Below, piece by piece: positions 844 through 31,395 of a stretch of DNA of 64,000 bases. Under the pieces are notes generated by a model. That model saw only the letters and a program-made list of their open reading frames with translations. It did no database searches and had not been told where the DNA came from. This DNA is from Lepidodermella squamata (taxonomy: Eukaryota > Animalia > Gastrotricha). The translations under genes and the position numbers were made by a program. Where the stretch lies: contig JBLDXI010000025.1 of NCBI GenBank assembly GCA_047495785.1, positions 2,046,001 through 2,110,000 of the forward strand, written 5' to 3'. How positions within the stretch are numbered: the first letter of the stretch is position 1; each line of letters begins with the position of its first letter.

Positions 844-1328
844 TTCGTTAGTTTAGGAGAGTTAAGCAACAACTGAAAATTCGCAGTGAATCTCAGTCGA
901 CTTGTAGCTGTCATTTATACTTAAACATCGTGTCATCTGTTCAAACAAGTTCCTAAGAAAGTGCGACACATAGCCCAAGAAAAATCATCCCTCCGCAGTT
1001 TTTCAGCTGAGGGTGGTCGCGAAATTATACTGGATGTGATCGTTCTGAAAGCAATGGCAGGTGAAAAAACATTGCTGGGCGGGTGTGATGAATTTCATAG
1101 GATAAGAGCTATTAAAATTATGAGTAATCTTTCATGGCGTGGCAATGTGTCACATCAGTGCACTGATAGGCAAACATTTGCTGCTAGTAAGAAATGCCTC
1201 GACGGTAGATCTGGCTGGCAAATATTTTTAAATACAGTTTTAACTTGTTTCAGCTCGTTTATTCTCAAGTCATTAAACAGAACAATCACAATGTGAACCG
1301 GCAAAAATTAACTTCATAAGGCATGAGA

Positions 1329-2893
1329 CTACATTGCATCATCGCCGTAGTACGATTTCGAGTAATTCAGAGGCGCAGATGGCAATGGCGGTGGTGATTG
1401 CTGAACCTTTATCACAAAAGCCGCAATCGGATACAGAATCGCTAGCAGCATGCTGGCGACAAAGCCGACAAAATTCAAGATGACAACAGCGATAACCGTC
1501 TTTGATAGTGGTGGCATTTCGTCTGGCTCGTCCTTTGCTTCGACTTTCTCGCCCAGGGTAAGCTCCGATTGCGTTGGGGATTTCGGTGGTACAACAGCAA
1601 CAGGCGTCAATCTGTTCCTCTTCGCCCGATATTTCTTCAAAAAATGCCATCTGTTGTAGTAGGAAATGATGGAATTTGAGTAAATGTCATGCTTCGAACG
1701 AACCTTAGCCTAATTATACCCCACCATTCCAAACCCTCATCGGGATCGAAAGCTTGCAGCGTGACTACGAACACAAAAATTGTTGCAACTGAACCTCCGA
1801 TAAGAATGTTCAAATATGTTAGAATTAGCGACTGCTGTGAAGACTTGGGTAATTGATCGACAATATAGCCTGCAAAATAGAACGTAGTTAGACCATTTCA
1901 TCAGTTTACTGGTGTTTTACTTTCGACGAATAGATTCGTGAGGAGGATGAAGATTTCCAGCGACGTTCTTTCGACTTGTTTTATTGGAATCAGGTAAACG
2001 ATAGCCTGAACGATCGTCAGTAACGCAATTGGTATCAAAAATGCTTGCTGGTAGAAGGTTGGATTTCTTTTGATGGCGATCCAGAAGTGAATCCGGCTAA
2101 AATATGTGTTGGTCGAAGCTCGGTACAAAGTTGGATAGGCTGTGCTATCTAAAGTTGGATTAGGAATTTATAGGATAATCTGATATCGTATATCTCACTT
2201 ATCAGCTTCCACATCTCATTTTCAGCGAAAATTGACAGCGAAACAGGGTCAGGCTTGTCAGGTCTCAATTTGAGCTTCAGCTCTACAGTTGTGTAAATGA
2301 CCGATTCGATGATAAAGGCGCATCGCCTAAAAATTGACTTCGAAATGACTTAATTGAATAATTTAGATTTCTCACTGATAGTCGAATGGGTAGTAAGTCA
2401 AATCGATTGCGCAACGAGTTTGAACTTTCCCAGTTGGGTGCCACCAAACCTGTCCGTCGTTAGTAAGACGATAGCCGAAGCTATCGCCAGCGAAAATTGT
2501 GTACATATCATCGATACTGTTCACTAGCTGCAAGTCTGGCTTCCAGAGTGTACCGCCAGGAAGTGTCAGCGATTTCACCCCTCCAAAGTCAGCCGAGTCC
2601 CAACTAACAGACGGGTCGACCCACCCCAGTTGTACTCGAACAGTTGACACCAATGTCTCAGCATTTTCGACAACCTCTTGAATTCGGATTAGGAAAAGAC
2701 GGCATACAACTGTAAAAGGGCAAGTTGTGTCGCTTGGATCAGAGCAGCCTGTAGACTCTGGTATTATTGTTTTGTCATAACTTCCAGTCAGATTTTTTGC
2801 TAGGAGTAACGCTGTTTCATACTGCGGGGATAAAGCCAATGATTGGACGAATAAATGTGCACAAACATGAAGAAATATGACTTTTTGTAACAT
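1329..2893 (-). CDS. Cys-loop ligand-gated ion channel subunit, divergent nAChR-like non-alpha, multi-exon
   Basis: Signal peptide, WKPDLQLVNS, Cys-loop CAIDLTYYPFDYQ|RC across an intron, TM1 after RNPTFY, M2 VERTSLEIFILL, M4 in ORF 1329-1640. No vicinal Cys pair in loop C. Confidence 0.9.
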
Positions 2894-5566: not shown

Positions 5567-6126
5567 ATTTATGAAAATGTTGTTTTCAGCCGGCTAAATT
5601 TTTGCGAGCGCGTGAAAGAGATGCGTGAAGTTTTGGCGCTTGTGAGGCCTCTTGTTTCTGGAACGTGAGGGTTCTATTCAGGTGTCAGTTTCAAGTGCGC
5701 GCTTTCAGCATTCAGCTGAGCGCCAAGAGGGGTGTTATCGTTGAGACCGTCGCATATTTTAATTCATCGTGAAGCCACTTTGTCCAATTTGTCTTAAAAA
5801 CTCCAAGTGCCGGGAGAATTTTGCGTGTACCAGTCCTGTGGCGCCAGAGTATTCTTGATCGAGCATGATGTTAGATTTTTTTGAATGCCTTCGAATTCAT
5901 AAATGATCAAAATAATAGTCAAAATATTCAAACATAGTGAAATTTTGGAGAATTATTACCTAAGATCGAAAATCGTTAGGTTTAGAGTTTAAAATTATAT
6001 AAATAAAATATGCGTGCCAAGAAAAAATGTATCCCACGCTCAGCCTACGCGAGATGTGTAACTTTCAGATATAAAACAAGCATCGTGTGCACAGCTTTTG
6101 ACAAGATAGAAAAAAAATCAACAGAA

Positions 6127-7567
6127 ATGTTACGCTACATCAAGCAGGTTTGAAAAGCAATTGCTTGCTCATGTTATTTCCTCAAATTGTGATTATTTCA
6201 GGGGCTTGCCAGTATTATTCTCGGCTTTGCATGGATTCAGCTATCACTATGCCAGTCATGTTGTAGCCTTCAGGGACAGGCATCTCCAACTATCAATCCG
6301 TCCAGTTTTCGCAGCCGGTCGACGGCTTTTCAGTTATTCTCAGATGTTAAAGTTACATGCAACGGCAGAGTTACTGGATGGAACTTCATCTCACGAGTTG
6401 CAACGGTAAATGGGCTCCATCTATCGATATGGCGTTTGGTCAATGGCGACAGCAAAACCTATCGCCTTGTCGGAGAAACGAAGATCGACAATTTCGCTGC
6501 TCAGCCGAATGCTTGGAATTCTTATTTAGTTGAAACGCCATTTTCTGTCCGGAGTGGAGATGTCCTCGGAGTTTATTACGATACCGCGACTGCCAGTGAT
6601 TCAAATGCCGCTTTCGTTAGTGCCTCCGAGACTACAATGTCTGCCGGTGAAAAGGACGGCCTTGTTTTCACTCGAACGTACATCTCAGTGGTTGGGGCCG
6701 ACAGAATCTTCGACTCGGGAAATGACAACCCAGTTTACTCGTTCAATAACGCTGGGGTCGATTTTAGAATACCGGGGGTTCAGGTTACCATTCAACAAGG
6801 CTCTGGTAGCGTGGTTAATGTGATTGATTCGCCTGATGGCGTGTGCAAGTCCCCAGCATATGATAGCGTTTCTGCCAGCCCATCGTTGTACCAGTCAAAA
6901 TCCACCCTTTTACAACTCCTCACAGGCTCATCCATTGGATGTAGCGGCTGGTTAGTAGCTTGGAACTACATCTCATCTACGACCACGGTTAATAACGTTT
7001 TACCTTATAAATTGAAGTTAGTCCTATTTATGTTTCGCAGATTAACGGATTATACCTTTCCATATGGCGAAAAGTCGCGATTACGGATGCTGTACGAGGG
7101 GATGACCCAAGTTATATCTTCAGGCTGATCGACAGCGTTCCGCTGAACAATGTTGGTGCATCGCGAAACCAATGGAATTCATACTCTCGATTCTCTCCTA
7201 TCGCAGTTCAACAAGGCGATGTGATAGGTAACAACTTATCTTGCGCTCCCATAACGAATTATAAATAAACTGCAGGAATTTTCTACGACGATTGGAAACG
7301 CAATGCTAACACTGCTGTCATTCCTCACGTAGAAGGGTCTCAAAGGGTTGATACTACGCCGACTTATGTTTCTCTAATTTCAGCTGATGATGTCTTCAAA
7401 AACAGTTGGTGAAGCTGTTTCCTTATCAAATTTCTGTTGTATTTTTTTTTCAAGGACTGGTGACATTCGCTAACTTGCCGACTGACTCGAGACAGCACGC
7501 GCTGCAAGCAGTAGTTTGGACAGGAAGTGACCCAAGTAGCGGCCGATGGAAAAGTACTGGATGTTGA
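6127..7567 (+). CDS. Secreted protein with two tandem copies of an unassigned beta-rich domain (multi-exon)
   Basis: MLRYIKQ|GLASIILGFAW signal. Repeat 1: CNGRVTGWNFIS..LHLSIWR..YRLVG..WNSY..FSVRSGDVLGVYYD. Repeat 2: CSGWLVAWNYIS..LYLSIWR..FRLID..WNSY..IAVQQGDVIGIFYD. Confidence 0.75.
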
Positions 7568-8159
7568 GAATGAAAATAATACTGAATTGTCATTAATTCT
7601 CAGTGACAAAATTCTATTCTAATAATTGAAGCTTTTTTGAAAGCTGTCTGAAATATTTCTATAAATGGGTCTGGTACAGGAAGTCGTACAATCGACTGTT
7701 TTTTAAATTTTCGGCCTCGAAAGCAATTGGGAACAGGTCACCGAGTTCTTAGGCATTTTGCAAACAAAAAGTTGGATGTTGGATGAATTATTCACAGTTT
7801 ACTTTCCTCAAACGGAGTTCATTGTAGCATTAATTCTCATTCGTATCCAAAAAGCAATGCTTCACTCGCCATTAGTTAATAATGAATGACGTTGCTATGG
7901 GAAACATCAATCAAAGCCTGACGTAGTCGCATTTCACACACACCTATTAATGGTCAGATTTTCTTCACAATGAAGGCCTATTCCCTTGAATACGCTGCTT
8001 CTACATGGATGTATTCTTGCCCCTCTGTTTTTTAATAGATCAAGCTGTGAATAGGGCTCAAATCTCGCGGGAGCACGAGAAAAAAGCAGCTTCTTTAGTA
8101 TTTTCACGAATCCTCACACCCGTCTGCTCTTGAAAGGGACCACTCGAAGTCGTCAAAAA

Positions 8160-10644
8160 ATGCTAGTTGCCCTCAGCAAAACGAACCGCCCGCAGACAGC
8201 TTCAGCTGACTCGATGATGAACGAGTTCGATGTAGCAGCGTATCAGCAGAAAATGGTCGAAGCTACCCAATCGATCTGCCGGTTGTCGTATCGCAACTAC
8301 AAAGGTGAATTATGCCGAGCGATGGGCTTCCTCCTCGCCATCAAATTACCCATCAAAGGCAACGTATTTGGCCTCATGACAAATGGAACTTTCCTGCCTC
8401 GTCACATCCTAGAATCGAGCCGATTCTTTTGCTTTGACATGGAATTCGATGAGTCACTGACAAATATGAAGCAGCATACGATCACTGTTGCTCTACATCG
8501 AGATATCGAAAGCTTTTACACATCGGATCTGAAGCATTTAGATGTAACTTTTGTAGAATTACGGCCTCAAGTTCAGCTGGCTTTCGCTGCGAACAACTGC
8601 GTGTTCCTTAAATCATCCGAGGAAGCTTTCCCTCCAACGGACCAAGACATTCTGATCGTCGATGAAACACTGAATTTGGCGAAATCGCGAATCTCGAGCA
8701 GTGGACGAATGCCGTCTGAACGACAGCTGACAAAGTTCGGTATGATCGGATCGCCGGTTTTGAACGACTTCTCTTTCAGTGTAATTGCTGTTGCGAAAAC
8801 GGGGGACAAGTTCTTCAAGAATGTGGCGACTGATCTTCGGTCAATTGTTCAGGATATTATTAAGGAGGGATTGAAGTTAGTCCCTCTGCCGCCCCCACCT
8901 CGGAAGTCTGTCATTGACAAAGAAATAACTACCATAGATGCGGTGAGTTCTATTCTAAATTCAGCTGTTCATCTTCTGATACTATTCTCTCGCAGACTAA
9001 AGGAAGATTGGCCCATATCAGGGACTCGGTTGTTATTCCTTTCGCGATGCGAGCATCCATTTGTGCTCGTTTGAGAAGTATGACAGAATTAAATTAATTT
9101 TAATGGTCGTGATAAAATTTGTTTCCAGATTTTCTAATACTCTCTGCTGATGATCTGCTTTCTTGCTCTGATGATCAAGTTAAGAGAGTCTTCCCGGAAG
9201 ATAGCCTTCAAAAGGCTGTCACTAAATGGCAAAAAGCCATAAACAGGAATCCGGTATGATTTTCCTATTATAATATATCGTAAATACAGCCGAATGGTTA
9301 CCTTTGAAATAGGATGAACAACTTAGAAAGGAAACAAAGCCACAGCGTAAAATATTGATCAATGGCTACGCTGCCAAACGAATCATTAATTGCTTCAGAA
9401 ATCCATTCAAGGTGAGAAATACACTTTGACTTGAATGATAACGTTACTTTTGGTCCCTCTTATAGCCTCGTTCTGGTGTTCGAACTTGCTTGAGCGATCC
9501 TCAATTTTTCTCGTCGCTAGGGAAATCGCCTAAAACGAAACTCTTCGAAGCTCCCTGCTACATCCGAGCGATACTTAACATCCCAGAGCAGCCGCCTCAA
9601 GACTCAAAAAGCAAACCGGGTACACCTGTCATCCTGATTCTTACCGCTGAAGGCCACGTGATCGCTCTAACAGCACTTGACTGGTCTTTCCGCTGGAAAA
9701 CTCGCATTTCCCTACCGGAGCGGGAAAAATTAGACGCGGAAGATCGAGAAGAAAAAGAAAAAGAAGCTCCTCAGCCTATCGATATAGTTTATGCTGTTTA
9801 CGACAACATCCTAGACAGCTTGTACATAACATGTGGCGACAGTAATATTTACCGGGTGAAGCTGGCTACCTTGAAAGAAGCAGCTAGATCGCACCATAAA
9901 TCAAAAGGCCAGAAGACGAGACCTATTGTTCCTTTGAAAACGCTTCTTGACTCAACAGCAACTGGTGGGAGGTGCTTCTGGGGACTTTCGATCGACGTTA
10001 GATCAAGACTTCTCTTCGCTTGTGACAATGGAGGGGCAGTCAATGACATTTCAGTCTGGAAGCTGCCTACCCCGGTTGAGACATCGCCGAAACGAGCAAG
10101 TTTAGTAACTCCGATGGAGCTTATCGCTTCGTTGAAGGCCGATTTCTACCCTGCATTCTGCTCGTTTTTCACCCCGACTCGAGAACAAGCTGAAGGCATC
10201 ATTGGAAAAGAGAATCTAGTAAATGCAACCAATTTTCTAGTTTTAGCAATTAGCGACTGGCGGATGAGTAGAATCGAGTTATTCGCCGGTCCCTTGATTG
10301 AAGATGAGGAAGATCTGGCCAACACTGAACTACGTCACATCAGCACTGTGGCTAAGAAAGACACGGCTAACCCAACGCGACCTGGTTACATCTCAAAACC
10401 CTGTGAAATTACGTTCGATGAAAATGGCAACTTGATAGCAGCTGATCAAATGAATAACCGAGTTTTAATCTTTGGACTCAGCAGTGATGGAGGTGACGGC
10501 AGGCCATTGAAATGTGTTTGGTCCTCGAAATCTATTAACTGCGTGGTCGAGAGATTTGCGTTGGCTGTTACGCCTAATACCGGTCGCCCGGCTCTTTTGA
10601 CCCATGCTGATTATAACACTCTAGTATCTTTCGAATCGTCGTAA
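8160..10644 (+). CDS. Trypsin-like pseudoprotease + SAM-like linker + NHL-like beta-propeller (multi-exon)
   Basis: N-terminal GFLL..LMTNGTFL..LDVTFVEL..GMIGSPVL (Trypsin_2-like). Short exons at 8996-9412. C-terminal KPCEITFDENGNLIAADQMNNRVLIF is NHL-like. Confidence 0.7.
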
Positions 10645-26393: not shown

Positions 26394-26604
26394 GAAACTT
26401 TTTCATTTAATACTAAGTAAACAAGCAATTTTGAATTTTTTTATAATAAAAAAGGTGTACTCGATATTTCGCCAACGAGCCTTTCTTTTTTGGTACAAAT
26501 TTCGAAAAGGACTTGTGAAACCAGGATGTATTTTAACGGAATCAAAGTCGAAATATGACTAGGGTCTTTTTTTTTAATAATTCTACGAGTTTTAGGTGCT
26601 TCGA

Positions 26605-26787
26605 GGTACGGCGACAAAACAGCAACTGCGCAGAACAGCAAATGCGACAAAACAGCAAATTGTTATTTCGCGACAAAACAGCGAAAACTTATTATGCAGA
26701 AGATGCATTGTGTTTCTGCTGTTAACAGCAACTTTTTCAACTTGCTAAATATGTCGAGTTTGCTGTTTGCTGTTATGACGGTCTGCC
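26605..26787. mobile_element. Same repeat family as 18740/19117, copy C
   Basis: ggtacggcgacaaaacagc ... gttatgacggtctgcc. Confidence 0.8.
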
Positions 26788-27554
26788 GACGAAGCGTGAG
26801 TTCTGAATTGAACACTCCTTCTTATAGAGAATTTTACACTGAAGTTACTGGTGATTTCTTAAGAATTATTGGGGTCAAGAAAGCAAGAATTTCATATGAC
26901 ACTAGAAAATGTGTCTCCGTTACAGCAAATTTAGTTCCAGTAAAAGGAGGACACCCTGTGAAACTTATAAAAGGCGAAAATCGAAATGATGGCGGAGAAT
27001 CTGATGCATGGTAAAAATTCAAGCTTGAAGCTTGACTTCGGAAATTACCTGTTGTTACAATCGCATTCTTTCTAGTAATTTTTTAATTTTCTTCGTTTAT
27101 TTTTCGTTTTATTTCCCGTTCTGAGATTTTCGCATAAGCACAAATGTTCGCAATCGTTTCAATTCTGACGAAGCTAAAACGCCACAGCTGAATCGCCGTT
27201 ATCCTGAGCTGATTTGCCGATTTCTTTGAGTCCGCCTCAAGAAATCAGCAAGACATTTCGGGTATCAGAAGGGCTGTTCGAAATTTCAGCAACGGCTGAT
27301 TTAGCCGAAATTTTCTGCTAAGCTCTCTCTTGCTGTTATGTCGCACAGACCTGAACTTTGCACTGCGTAAATAATGCACTCCTCCCCATTTTCATGTGAT
27401 GCTTTGAGACTATTTGAATTAAGCCTCATTTTTACTCTTTTTCACGTTATGAATTGATTAAACGTGGATTCTGCACTCAGCGTTTAACAAACACACATTG
27501 AAAACCGTGCACATATTATAGTAGTAGCTGTGATACACATTGATGTGAGTAGTC

Positions 27555-28982
27555 ATGAGTGGATACGGCCTCGAGCTGGCAATTTCATTGTCAGGCCTCG
27601 CCGCAGTTTTCATACCCATCGCAATTTCAAAGTTCATTAAAAGCTTCTTGCAACAAAACAAGCTAATCCAAGCCGAAAAGCTGAAATGGCAACAGGACCA
27701 TACCCTCTACTTCGACAGGGACGTCCGAAGCCAGGCCATCGAACTCCTGGACCGCGGCGAATTTTCACCCGGCAAAACTGTTAACCTATGCAGAATCGAC
27801 CGGCATTACCTCGGCGTGAGTTACTCCCACTGGTTCCTGACCTGCGACGATTACTGCCTGGAATTCGGATCGGACGAAATCGACCTGGACGAAGCTAGAG
27901 TTCAAATCGTGAGAAACCAGTATGAAGACGGCAAGTACCGAATTGAAAAGGTCCAGCAAATCACCGAGGTCATGCATCAACGCATTCGCAGCGTTGTCGG
28001 CATGTGCAATTACTCGATGTGCCTTCGCAACTGCGAGCATGTCGCTAATTACATAGTCCGCGGCCGGTGGATGAGTGCGCAGATGGATGGCGAGAATGGG
28101 CTGATGCGCTTCTTCAAGGTTCACATTGCCAGTGACATTCTACGGCGCATCAATTCATTCCCGGCTCAAATCAGGCCGCATTTCTTCGACCCGAACCATG
28201 CCCCGAGGAAGGTTTACAGCTTCATCGATGACAACTTCCGAGCCACCAGATTCGAGTACTACCTCGACTCGAACCAAGATAAGGACTACAACATTCTTAT
28301 CGTTGGACCAACGGGCGCTGGAAAGTCTCGTCTTATCAACGTGATTTTCAACGAAGAGATCTGCGAGTCTGAGATAAGTTTCGAAAACGTGACCAGGGAG
28401 ATCTACTTCATCAGAGGTAAAGGGAAAGTCGCTGGGCAAAAACGGAACATTATCGTGGCTGATACTGTCGGCTTCTGTGATCGTCAGTGGAACAACGAAG
28501 AGGTTCTTCGAATGTTACGAGGTCGTATCGGAGCCAATGTTCGCCATCTGGATGCAGTTTTCATCCTGTGCTCGGCTTCAGACCGACTACCACCTGCGTA
28601 TTTCGAATCTGTAGGCAATATCCTAGACTGGTTGGGCTATCAAAGCCGAAAGAATCGTTTCATGTTCCTCGCGACTAAGTCTGATTCGATAAACGATAGG
28701 AAGATTGAACAGCTAAAGGACCAATTTCCGAGGCTATTTCAGGCCGAGAAGAATGCGGCTGATCCTCGAGATGTTAACCAAAGAGCACTGCGGAGGATCG
28801 ACGAGTTGGGCGAACTTCATTTTATAGGATTTCCTGATGAAACGGTTTTTGATGGCAATGCGTCGACGAAGCAAAAAGTGCTGCAAAATTGGAAGGATAT
28901 AAGGGACTTTATTGACGCGGGAAGCGACGACAGTAACATTCACGTTCCCTCACTAACTGCTGGTTACTGTCCAATTTTGTAG
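27555..28982 (+). CDS. TM-LRAT(permuted NlpC/P60)-AIG1/GIMAP-like GTPase fusion with CaaX, intronless
   Basis: N-terminal hydrophobic segment. YSHWFL and LRNCEHVANY (His and NC motifs). GPTGAGKS (G1), VT (G2), DTVG (G3), TKSD (G4). C-terminal CPIL. Confidence 0.85.
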   Translation: MSGYGLELAISLSGLAAVFIPIAISKFIKSFLQQNKLIQAEKLKWQQDHTLYFDRDVRSQAIELLDRGEFSPGKTVNLCRIDRHYLGVSYSHWFLTCDDYCLEFGSDEIDLDEARVQIVRNQYEDGKYRIEKVQQITEVMHQRIRSVVGMCNYSMCLRNCEHVANYIVRGRWMSAQMDGENGLMRFFKVHIASDILRRINSFPAQIRPHFFDPNHAPRKVYSFIDDNFRATRFEYYLDSNQDKDYNILIVGPTGAGKSRLINVIFNEEICESEISFENVTREIYFIRGKGKVAGQKRNIIVADTVGFCDRQWNNEEVLRMLRGRIGANVRHLDAVFILCSASDRLPPAYFESVGNILDWLGYQSRKNRFMFLATKSDSINDRKIEQLKDQFPRLFQAEKNAADPRDVNQRALRRIDELGELHFIGFPDETVFDGNASTKQKVLQNWKDIRDFIDAGSDDSNIHVPSLTAGYCPIL

Positions 28983-29187
28983 AATGTGATTTTCAGTAAA
29001 AACATAATCAAATAAGTTTCGATTCAAATCATAGGAAGTCTGTTTTCCGCCATTAAGTTTTCCAGCAATCTAGAGGAACCTTCGAAAGTAATCAACGACA
29101 AGAAACGTTACAACTTTTATTTTATGTTAATTGCTGACTTCAAATCATCGTCAGAATTGGCGTAGTTCTATGTTCTTGAGTTTGCAC

Positions 29188-31395
29188 TCAATCCGAAAGT
29201 ATTGCAGGGGCTAGGCCTAATTTACACAGGCTTCGGTAATTAACATTCAACAGCAAAGACAACTGCAACGCCTCAGTTTTTGTATCGGCGTTTTGGTTTA
29301 CAGTGGAAGGCGATACAAAATGCTTTGTTCCATTCGTCGATGAAGGGAGTGAGAAGACATATTGTGCGACGAGAGAGAGAATAGGTATATCATCCTTCAA
29401 TCTGTTCCAAAATCGGTAGTTTTCATCACATTTACCGAGTTCGTTTGTGGCTAAGGGCGCTGGGAGGTAGCTACCATTAAGGTATCTAATTTCTTGGGGA
29501 AGAACTCTCTGAAGCTGAGACTGGTTAACAGCTGAGTTGTCTTCGACCCTTCTTTCTGGCAGGCATATGCGTTTAAGCGGCGGCAGCTGGTGGTTGAAAC
29601 TTTCGGAGTATTTCTCGAATTCAGGTTCCGTTGAAGGAGAGCGTTCATCTTGCTGAGATTTAGCCTCCAGCAAGTCTCGAATAGGTAGTCCTTCAATTAG
29701 AAGCTTGACATCTTCATCAGTTAAAGTTGAGTATCGTCGCAGCCGAAAGTCGAAATGGAGAGCTAACAAGTGAATGTCGCTTTCAAAATGACTTCTGAAG
29801 CTTTCCTTCAATTCATTGCAAACCAGATCACGTTGAGGCTAAAATGTGTCTCAAAATAGGTACTTGTGCAAAATTTAATTGGGAGAAAACAAACCTTTAA
29901 TCTGTTTTGAAAATTTCCGCAATTTTGCAAGTTCGCGATCGCTTGTCGGACAACAACGAGAACTACGCCGCAATGAGCATCCTGCGTCTCGCAGGCTTCA
30001 ATGGCATCGATCAACACTTCGATCACATTAGCGAGAGCTGTAGTCTTATTAATATCCTCTTCTTTGACATCGGGCATTAAATAGGCCTCTTCGGATTTTT
30101 TTATAAATCTGATCGCCTGGAAGTCAATAAATTGGCGCAGGAATTGAAGAAGATAATTCCAGCGATAACTGCGCTCTGAATTACGATGGAACTTGGAGTC
30201 ATGAGAAGAATCTGTCTTCGTATAATCTTTGGCCATCTTGACTATCCGTCGAACTTCATCTGAGCTTTTGAATGACTCATAAAAGCTGTTGATCAACAAA
30301 TGGCAAGGATCTCTGAGCGTTCTTCGGCCGTAGTCGCAGTTCAATCTTGCAAACGTTTCGTTGGCCAATGAGGAAGGATTCATTTCACTCATGAGTTCAT
30401 CTAACAGCTCAGTGAAACCGTCTTTGAAATGACTGCGAGCGTTCGAGATGATTTCGCGGTCTGGGGATAATTTCGATAGATCAAGGCAATCGGAACTCGT
30501 CCTTGATGGGTTCGAAGTGATCGCAGCTATGAATATCGGTTTTTGAGCAGAATCCCCGTTGAAGCTAACTTCTTGCTGAAATCGCTCTACAGCCGCTTTG
30601 ATTTGACCGAGCAACATGCAGCTGGTGACTTGGTGATAATCTATTTCGAAAATTCTAGGAGCAAATCTGATACGCTGAAACGAAGCGTTCATGTACTCAA
30701 CATGCAGAACTAGGAAATCGCATCTCCCCGTGCAAGTCCAGATTTCTGGGTATAATGCAAACCCGATACAACCTAAAACATTGGTCAGTTGAATACATTT
30801 CATGGGACGGCATATGTGTCTTACCTGAAGATAGTGAATGAAACGTATTGAATATTCTATCAAGCAGCCGTCGCTGCTCAGCCGTGACTTCATCCGCGCT
30901 AGGAAGGTTGAGATTAGGTTGGCGACAGGCGACTTGAATCGTGAGAAGATGAAAGTTGAGTGGGTCAGGGCTAACCAGATCTTGTACTGGTACCCCATTT
31001 ACTGCGGACTGAAGGGCTATGCTAGTTAGCAAACTCGGCAGCGTTTCGTTTTGATTTCCGTGATGAGGTTTTCCAGGCAGTAACGCTCGGCTCTCCTGCA
31101 CTCGTGACTCATTGATAATCAACTCGGCATGTTCTTTACTCAGATGACGTCGAAGATTAGCGACATTTACAGAGCCATTCGTGTTCAAAGCGGCTGTTTT
31201 TAGCTTTGCGCATTTGTTGCAGGCGTAAACAGGCGCCCCGGAAGGATTGCAACCTGCCCAAGTAAAATTTGACTCGCAGGTTGGGCAGGGCATACGAGGA
31301 GCAGGCCTGCAAGGGTCGAGAGTAGTCGAGAGAAGGGAATGGCGCCGCTTGATACATAGGCCCATACTCTTATTATTGCTGCTGAAATCTGACAT
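29188..31395 (-). CDS. Domesticated hAT transposase-derived BED zinc-finger (ZBED-like) gene, intron-containing
   Basis: BED finger YACNKC..NLRRHLSKEH, YRWNY, HFDFRLR, and hATC dimerisation FWNRLKDDIPILSLVAQYVFSLPSS. Introns join ORFs 30697-31395, 29808-30998 and 29188-29811. Confidence 0.75.

Follow-up and report, generated by a model that had tools for sequence, protein, structure and literature searches.

The window considered here, meaning the whole 64,000-nucleotide stretch of DNA from the gastrotrich Lepidodermella squamata that was analysed, contains on its forward strand a gene located ~2.07 Mb from the start of contig C25, in an assembly of 121 Mb and 151 contigs. The gene is a complete, uninterrupted and intronless open reading frame (ORF) with an ATG start, in which a hydrophobic N terminus, a domain of the LRAT/PLAAT type, a GTPase of the AIG1/GIMAP type and a C-terminal CaaX box are predicted to follow one another (Table 1). 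The frame is open for only 2 codons 5' of the ATG (477 aa in total), which fixes the N terminus of the 475-aa ORF. All the elements from which the original prediction was built, i.e. the intronless ORF, the YSHW and RNCEH motifs, GTPase motifs G1-G4, the hydrophobic N terminus and the terminal CPIL, are present within positions 27555-28982, and the proposed order of membrane segment, LRAT/PLAAT-like domain, AIG1/GIMAP GTPase and CaaX box is supported by Pfam, profile, fold and family conservation analyses. The gene represents a new conserved domain architecture made from two known domain families, which is widespread in little-studied eukaryotes and uncharacterised.

Table 1. Features of the gene and of its predicted protein (positions in the window)
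Feature	Position	Strand	Basis
Complete intronless coding sequence, 475 aa plus stop	27555..28982	+	ORF; coverage in run X1 confined to about 27,470-29,139
N-terminal hydrophobic segment, residues 6-28, predicted membrane anchor, then Lys26/Lys29	27570..27638	+	19-residue Kyte-Doolittle mean (KD19) 2.12; N-terminal comparison
Family-specific helix pair before the enzyme core; near-invariant E41, W45, H49, D54	27660..27752	+	Conservation; predicted model
LRAT/PLAAT-like (H-box/NC, permuted NlpC/P60) domain, residues ~74-178	27774..28088	+	LRAT matches; PLAAT2 profile alignment; Foldseek and Foldseek-independent fold matches; conservation
Putative triad codons: His92, Glu103, Cys160	27828-27830; 27861-27863; 28032-28034	+	Conservation; PLAAT2 profile alignment
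Linker, residues 179-238, conserved (N200 and P203 invariant) and leading to strand 1 of the G domain	28089..28268	+	Conservation
GTPase domain of the AIG1/GIMAP-Toc type, residues 239-465, extended at its C-terminal end by helices	28269..28949	+	Pfam AIG1; GIMAP7 PDB match; Toc/GIMAP folds
GTPase motif codons: G1, G3, G4	28305-28328; 28461-28472; 28674-28685	+	Alignment
CaaX box C-P-I-L, residues 472-475; X = Leu predicts geranylgeranylation	28968..28979	+	Cys at -4 in 88/104 relatives

Two sequencing runs bear on the status of the gene. In a 2024 DNA-like run, coverage is even at ~100x across all 5 kb around it; contigs from a small 2015 run (X1), which is only guessed to be RNA, cover 27,470-29,139, i.e. 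the ORF with short flanks, and outside this region only a repeat. The gene is thus probably transcribed, to the extent that the guess as to the nature of run X1 is right.

As judged from its sequence and predicted structure, the C-terminal half of the protein belongs to the AIG1/GIMAP-Toc clade and has kept its nucleotide pocket intact, so that GTP binding is predicted. Pfam AIG1 (PF04548) matches residues 246-385 at 32.4 bits, against a cut-off of 27 bits, and was also matched by 32 of 33 relatives; a sequence search of the PDB gave GIMAP7 as the best match, followed by septins. The G1 (GPTGAGKS, 251-258), G2 (T280), G3 (D303-T-V-G306) and G4 (T374-K-S-D377) motifs can all be assigned, and among 104 full-length relatives K257 is present in every one and D303 in 101, with G4 taking the form (T/N)-K-x-(D/E). 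Foldseek comparisons of the G-domain, as predicted by AlphaFold2 (AF2; mean predicted local distance difference test score, pLDDT, of 81.9 for the full-length model), returned Toc34/33 together with GIMAP7, 2, 5, 1 and 4 as the best matches, with probability 1.0; the top 30 were nearly all Toc34/33 and GIMAP1/2/4/5/7, with E-values from 1.7e-8 to 1e-5. A complex prediction of the G-domain homodimer with GTP (score 0.07, mark 0.32) was uninformative either way.

The N-terminal domain is identified by sequence profiles and by modelling as a divergent member of the LRAT/PLAAT (H-box/NC, permuted NlpC/P60) type. Pfam matches to both AIG1 and LRAT were to be expected from the original prediction; that to AIG1 was recovered, whereas for the focal protein itself LRAT (PF04970) scored below the cut-off (19.6 against 24.3 bits, E 1.2e-3), aligning over profile positions 72-118, which correspond to the NC region. 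LRAT was, however, matched independently by 24 of the 33 relatives at E <= 0.01 (best 1.8e-5), such that LRAT profile matches in relatives and PLAAT folds (see below) are both found for the region (~70-175) in which the domain had been placed. A profile of residues 36-238 aligns to PLAAT2 (4dpz) via G..YSL..NCEH..N....G...S.Q (E 0.064), and the NCEH motif of the family is aligned with those of PLAAT2 and PLAAT4. Alignment of the N-domain profile by hhalign with the Pfam-positive LRAT protein encoded in the same genome gave an E-value of 8.7e-5; the same comparison with the second LRAT-like gene of the genome (L015, on C4) gave no match. Otoferlin, the top row of the profile search against PDB sequences (E 0.033), was rejected as a chance 'ENCE' match.

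When the domain is modelled by AF2 (pLDDT 77.8, with a core above 90; core values mostly at 85-98), His92 of the Y-S-H92-W-F motif and Glu103 lie on adjacent strands of the beta-sheet, and Cys160 of the L-R158-N159-C160-E161-H162 motif is at the start of a helix. The top Foldseek matches were parechovirus 2A and PLAAT2 (both with probability 1.0) and Aichivirus 2A. A Foldseek-independent structure search with the predicted model against 48,161 chains ranked first a subunit of the Euglena respiratory supercomplex (8iuf_E7, Z 7.3), then Aichivirus 2A (Z 6.6) and PLAAT4 (Z 6.2, rmsd 3.1, 91 residues, 28% identity); YiiX, DeSI, TseH, CLN5 and a B. cereus cysteine peptidase occupied ranks 4-8 (Z 5.6-4.2), with unrelated folds from rank 9 downwards (Z 3.5 or less). 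Atlas fold and feature searches returned LRAT and NC-domain clusters. The match at rank 1, chain E7 of the Euglena gracilis supercomplex, may be an LRAT-like accessory subunit.

Given this range of structural neighbours, the N-domain might instead be an active cysteine hydrolase that acts on a protein modification or peptide bond rather than on a phospholipid, for example a depalmitoylase/thioesterase, an isopeptidase (deSUMOylase- or DUB-like) or an amidase, which the GTPase and lipid anchors would deliver to membrane-associated protein substrates. PPPDE1 (Z 6.0), DeSI (5.6), YiiX (5.6), TseH (4.6) and CLN5 (4.4) indeed score about as well as the PLAATs, and the third triad residue appears to be Glu rather than the His of PLAAT. 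The Pfam, profile and hhalign matches are, however, to LRAT/PLAAT only, with Peptidase_C97 never appearing; the extended PLAAT signature is held in common; and the identity with PLAAT4 is the highest among the structural matches. We regard a protein-directed hydrolase as unlikely.

Conservation within the family bears on whether the domain is catalytic at all. Among the 104 full-length relatives, H92 is present in 99 and E103 in 96, while R143, R158, N159 and W172 are each found in all 104; E161 and H162 are also near-invariant, in proteins that are only 25-40% identical. Position 160 is Cys in 75 relatives and Ser in 26. Some picornavirus 2A H-box/NC proteins act as non-catalytic binding modules, and the N-domain could similarly be a membrane- or protein-binding module, making the whole protein a dual-anchored GIMAP-like scaffold or tether; the ranking of viral 2A H/NC proteins among the best structural matches, the Ser variants, a few members without the His or the Glu, and one paralogue (L010) that lacks the His, the Cys, the P-loop Ser and the CaaX box are all in keeping with such a role. 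Near-invariance of His92, Glu103, Arg158, Asn159, Glu161 and His162 at such low overall identity is, however, what an active site would be expected to show, and of the 26 variants with Ser, 19 retain both the His and the Glu, which looks like a nucleophile swap and not decay. A non-catalytic domain is thus improbable, and slightly more so than one directed at proteins. An apparent Cys-to-Ser exchange of the nucleophile in a quarter of the members is also of enzymological interest.

With respect to an LRAT/PLAAT-type active site, the Cys-His-His triad of PLAATs was not found, since the corresponding strand carries the near-invariant Glu103; a Cys-His-Glu triad is probable on the basis of the model. 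A polar or acidic third catalytic residue is usual elsewhere among NlpC/P60 enzymes. The residues that are conserved like the catalytic ones extend to a stretch preceding the core, E41-x3-W45-x3-H49-x4-D54 (within residues 36-66), which is near-invariant and absent from PLAATs.

Predicted anchors at both ends of the protein are a family trait, as deduced from the sequences of the relatives. Over residues 6-24 of the focal protein the KD19 value of 2.12 is in the transmembrane range; the protein begins MSGYGL and so does not have the combination of Met-Gly with Ser/Thr near position 6 that is typical of myristoylation. The focal subclade (L001-L004) has, in place of the Met-Gly (MG) start, a hydrophobic helix of 19-23 residues (KD19 2.1-2.5) with lysines after, rather than before, it, an arrangement that favours an N-out, C-in orientation. 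Among 73 full-length representatives, 40 have an MG start, 55 a CaaX box (44 of these ending in Leu) and 34 both, the commonest ends being M-G-x-x-x-S/T at the start and C-a-a-L at the finish; of 104 full-length relatives, 88 have kept the Cys at position -4. The paralogues L007 and L009 retain the MG start, L006 and L008 have a short hydrophobic extension at the site of the ancestral one, and an N-myristoyltransferase (NMT) is encoded in the genome. That one anchor has been independently replaced by another argues that attachment of the N terminus to a membrane matters for function. The dual anchoring that had been predicted for the single protein is strengthened by these comparisons, since most relatives carry an N-myristoylation signal and a CaaX box.

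Because the hydrophobic segment begins as early as residue 6, it could in principle be removed as a signal peptide or serve as a type II anchor, in which case the domains would be lumenal or extracellular and the CaaX box fortuitous. We consider this barely credible: the MG start of most homologues and the CaaX Cys both direct modifications that are cytosolic, the Lys residues that follow the helix favour a cytosolic C-terminal side, and GTPases of the AIG1/GIMAP clade are cytosolic.

The genome contains 10 intact intronless members of the family, plus a few broken fragments. The closest relative of the focal gene is a copy on C26, the protein of which is 99% identical although the DNA differs by 4.7%; the ratio of nonsynonymous to synonymous divergence (dN/dS) for this pair is 0.019 at a dS of 0.235, and that of the next pair, L003/L004, is 0.11. 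Purifying selection on the focal gene is strong, and it is a real, constrained host gene. The C25 and C26 loci are collinear across 4.4 kb at 91-96% identity and could be either haplotypes that have diverged or the product of a large duplication of recent date; at 24 of 24 positions, variant letters in the reads are those of the C26 copy, which shows that the reads include both. More widely, the gastrotrich copies form at least two old clades in the tree, with saturated dS.

Other members show signs of a less constrained history. L006 and L008 (G000:C28:1030717-1032051 and 1047303-1048451), a tandem pair ~16 kb apart, have a dN/dS of 0.93, and L008 has lost the CaaX end. In L010 (G000:C24:1292514-1293665), His92 is replaced by Gln and Cys160 by Ser, the P-loop reads GPPGIGKF, there is no CaaX box and the branch is very long; judging from these changes, it is likely either a pseudoenzyme or a copy in decay whose ORF is still intact. 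Broken GTPase-half fragments with several stop codons (G000:C21:368774-369175 and C140:13669-17007) read as evidence for gene birth and death in the family.

Two genes of conventional LRAT/NlpC-like type, without a GTPase, are also present in the genome, L014 (G000:C46:1690000-1694500, ORF 1161-2519, reverse strand) and L015 (G000:C4, ORF 923-1795, forward strand). The L014 protein has an NCEHF motif followed by hydrophobic, transmembrane-like segments, as in vertebrate PLAATs.

An exhaustive search with the N-domain profile gave 375 representative clusters (at 50% identity) with E <= 1e-3, 246 of them with E <= 1e-10; nearly all of the clusters carry the fusion. In the top 150 matches the N-domain is fused to the GTPase in 110 (10 of which have duplicated domains) and stands without it in 39, which are mostly short fragments; the fusion is therefore essentially obligate. 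Named hosts comprise a rotifer (Adineta ricciae), a nematode (Acrobeloides nanus), a springtail (Folsomia candida), fungus gnats (two Bradysia species) and a chytrid (Cladochytrium tenue), the rest being environmental eukaryotic contigs, many of them transcript-sized; a profile-seeded word search returned the same 38 proteins as a single-sequence search and no further named hosts. Database entries label the family members as 'AIG1-type G domain-containing protein', 'GTPase IMAP family member 4' or 'hypothetical', labels by which the enzyme half of the family has been overlooked. We found no description of an LRAT/PLAAT-AIG1/GIMAP fusion in the literature that could be searched, where only gene lists or unrelated mentions turned up; the family is widespread, yet not already characterised.

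Several environmental relatives (P0031, P0033, P0042, P0114, P0126 and P0096) carry the N-domain 2-3 times in tandem ahead of the GTPase, or have an N-G unit that is repeated, and these forms mostly have Ser at the nucleophile position. Pfam searches of the long family members gave no informative extra domains, a match in P0051 being a low-complexity artefact.

The lack of introns had been taken in the original prediction to suggest retroposition or a horizontal origin, which the wider family does not bear out. All ~10 paralogues are intronless, including those in clades with saturated dS, so the intronless state is old in this genome; the Adineta gene is likewise intronless and most relatives outside the genome are also single ORFs, whereas the Bradysia coprophila gene has one spliceosomal intron (64 nt, GT..AG, after codon 221) and the chytrid gene model has introns. 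Lack of introns is accordingly an old habit of the family rather than a sign of recent retroposition of the focal gene. That the gene might have arisen recently by retrocopying or horizontal transfer, or be a contaminant of the assembly, could be argued from its single exon, from a high-copy repeat ~600 bp upstream and from the patchy taxonomic distribution of the family. Its position 2.07 Mb into a multi-megabase contig, the 10 paralogues in at least two old clades, the strong purifying selection and the introns of the fly and chytrid relatives all speak against this, and no relative or donor turned up in pattern scans of viral contigs and of the genomes of prokaryotic species, although, being pattern-limited, such scans are weak evidence of absence. 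Taking the three together we judge them highly improbable, and the contaminant and recent-retrocopy readings are rejected. As to the family as a whole, the tree unites Folsomia with Bradysia (SH-aLRT 98), which is what one would expect if the gene had been inherited vertically within the hexapods; the distribution may reflect either an ancient origin with loss or horizontal spread.

Comparison with better-known systems helps to place the fusion. The N-domain shares with PLAAT1-5/HRASLS and LRAT the order of His then Cys, the position of the Cys at a helix start within N-C-E-H, the G..YS..NCEH..N....G...S.Q signature and a membrane-anchored setting, and its predicted fold matches those of PLAAT2 and PLAAT4. 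It differs in scoring below the Pfam cut-off, in having Glu for the second His and Ser for the Cys in ~25% of the family, and in its extra conserved N-terminal helix pair; further, the C-terminal transmembrane tail that follows the enzyme domain in PLAATs is missing, its place being taken by the linker, GTPase and prenylation signal. The 2A H-box/NC proteins of picornaviruses (parechovirus, Aichivirus; PDB 7zu3, 7zv6) are top-ranking structural matches with the same H-box/NC motif logic, but are pieces of viral polyproteins with no GTPase and no lipid anchors.

The other half resembles GIMAP/AIG1 (IAN) proteins and Toc34/33 in its AIG1 match, its G1-G4 motifs with T/N-K-x-D/E, its best structural matches, its membrane anchoring, its lineage-specific expansions and its patchy phylogenetic distribution. 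GIMAPs are anchored by C-terminal transmembrane helices, not by a CaaX box, and are not known to have an enzymatic partner domain; the family described here differs in having the N-terminal LRAT-like domain and signals for lipid modification. An analogy of function only can be drawn with GBP1/2/5 and the IRG GTPases, lipid-modified immune GTPases that assemble on target membranes. The GBPs use a CaaX box, human GBP2 ending in CNIL as do many members of the present family, and Irga6 uses an N-myristate; however, GBP and IRG proteins have dynamin-like or IRG folds rather than AIG1, and are not known to carry a covalently linked lipid-modifying enzyme domain or to be homologous to the family beyond the P-loop.

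The reading that we prefer, to which we give about an even chance of being correct, is that the protein is a GTP-switched, membrane-bound acyl hydrolase or transferase that acts on membrane lipids. The two-domain enzyme would face the cytosol, either pinned to one membrane at both ends or bridging two, via its N-terminal hydrophobic helix (an N-myristate in most relatives) and a geranylgeranyl group on the C-terminal CPIL. Cys160 would serve as nucleophile and His92 as base, with Glu103 probably the third residue. Like GIMAPs on the surfaces of organelles, the AIG1-type GTPase would most likely serve as a switch governed by its nucleotide, or as a module for assembly. It would thereby set the time and place at which the LRAT-like domain reacts with a membrane glycerophospholipid to give an acyl-enzyme intermediate; the acyl chain would then be hydrolysed or transferred, and the target membrane remodelled or damaged. 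The two domain assignments, the conservation of catalytic and GTP-binding residues and the family-wide anchor signals at both ends are shown by the analysis, whereas we infer the lipid substrate, the coupling to GTP, the topology and any immune role.

Several points weigh against this reading. The LRAT score of the focal protein is sub-threshold, and its sequence likeness to LRAT proteins does not reach beyond ~40 residues surrounding the NC motif. The structure searches, with a predicted model as query, gave modest Z-scores (5.5-7); the closest folds, moreover, include peptidases and isopeptidases (PPPDE/DeSI, YiiX, TseH), so that the fold leaves the substrate class unfixed. Correspondence between the second His of PLAAT and Glu103 is by strand order, not from coordinates, and about a quarter of the family has Ser in place of the Cys nucleophile. 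Support is computational throughout; an effect of GTP on the enzyme domain is a proposal made from the architecture, and run X1 is RNA by guess only.

The mode of action of GIMAP/AIG1 proteins is still unclear, and a natural and conserved fusion with a PLAAT-like domain, with predicted membrane anchors at both ends, points to a direct functional link, i.e. gating of a membrane-lipid enzyme by the GTPase, which could be tested with a single recombinant protein. PLAAT enzymes rupture organelle membranes and act as picornavirus host factors (bioRxiv 10.1101/2024.04.06.588386). Lineage-specific expansion, decaying paralogues (L008, L010) and patchy distribution, as observed here, are often seen in immune-type families, an analogy that is no proof of a role in defence; gating of a lipase by GTP and an attack on pathogen or symbiont vacuoles, as in the original prediction, would likewise be arguments by analogy. 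In its boldest and rather doubtful form, the proposal would be that the focal gene is the first example to be recognised of a eukaryotic class of dual-lipidated effectors of cell-autonomous defence, in which the GTPase would sense or assemble on a foreign or damaged membrane and switch on the covalently attached PLAAT-like phospholipase. Were this so, one polypeptide would do what vertebrates split between GBP/IRG GTPases and PLAAT enzymes, and the micro-eukaryotes of soil and fresh water would have kept the family in a patchy manner, or have exchanged it among themselves.

The surroundings of the gene in the window hold two further features. On the reverse strand at 29188-30998 there are two adjoining long ORFs of 207 and 396 aa with a 4-nt overlap, which could represent a single gene interrupted by a frameshift or an intron, or else an orphan that has escaped annotation; neither had a Pfam match, and there is no run X1 coverage of them. 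Upstream of the gene, the high-copy dispersed repeat referred to above occupies 26468-26968, where the depth in the DNA-like run rises to 5,900-9,500 against a baseline of ~100. The repeat is present in run X1 too, has many loose ends, contains tandem units of 17 and 26 nt (26611-26693), and is probably a fragment of a transposable element.

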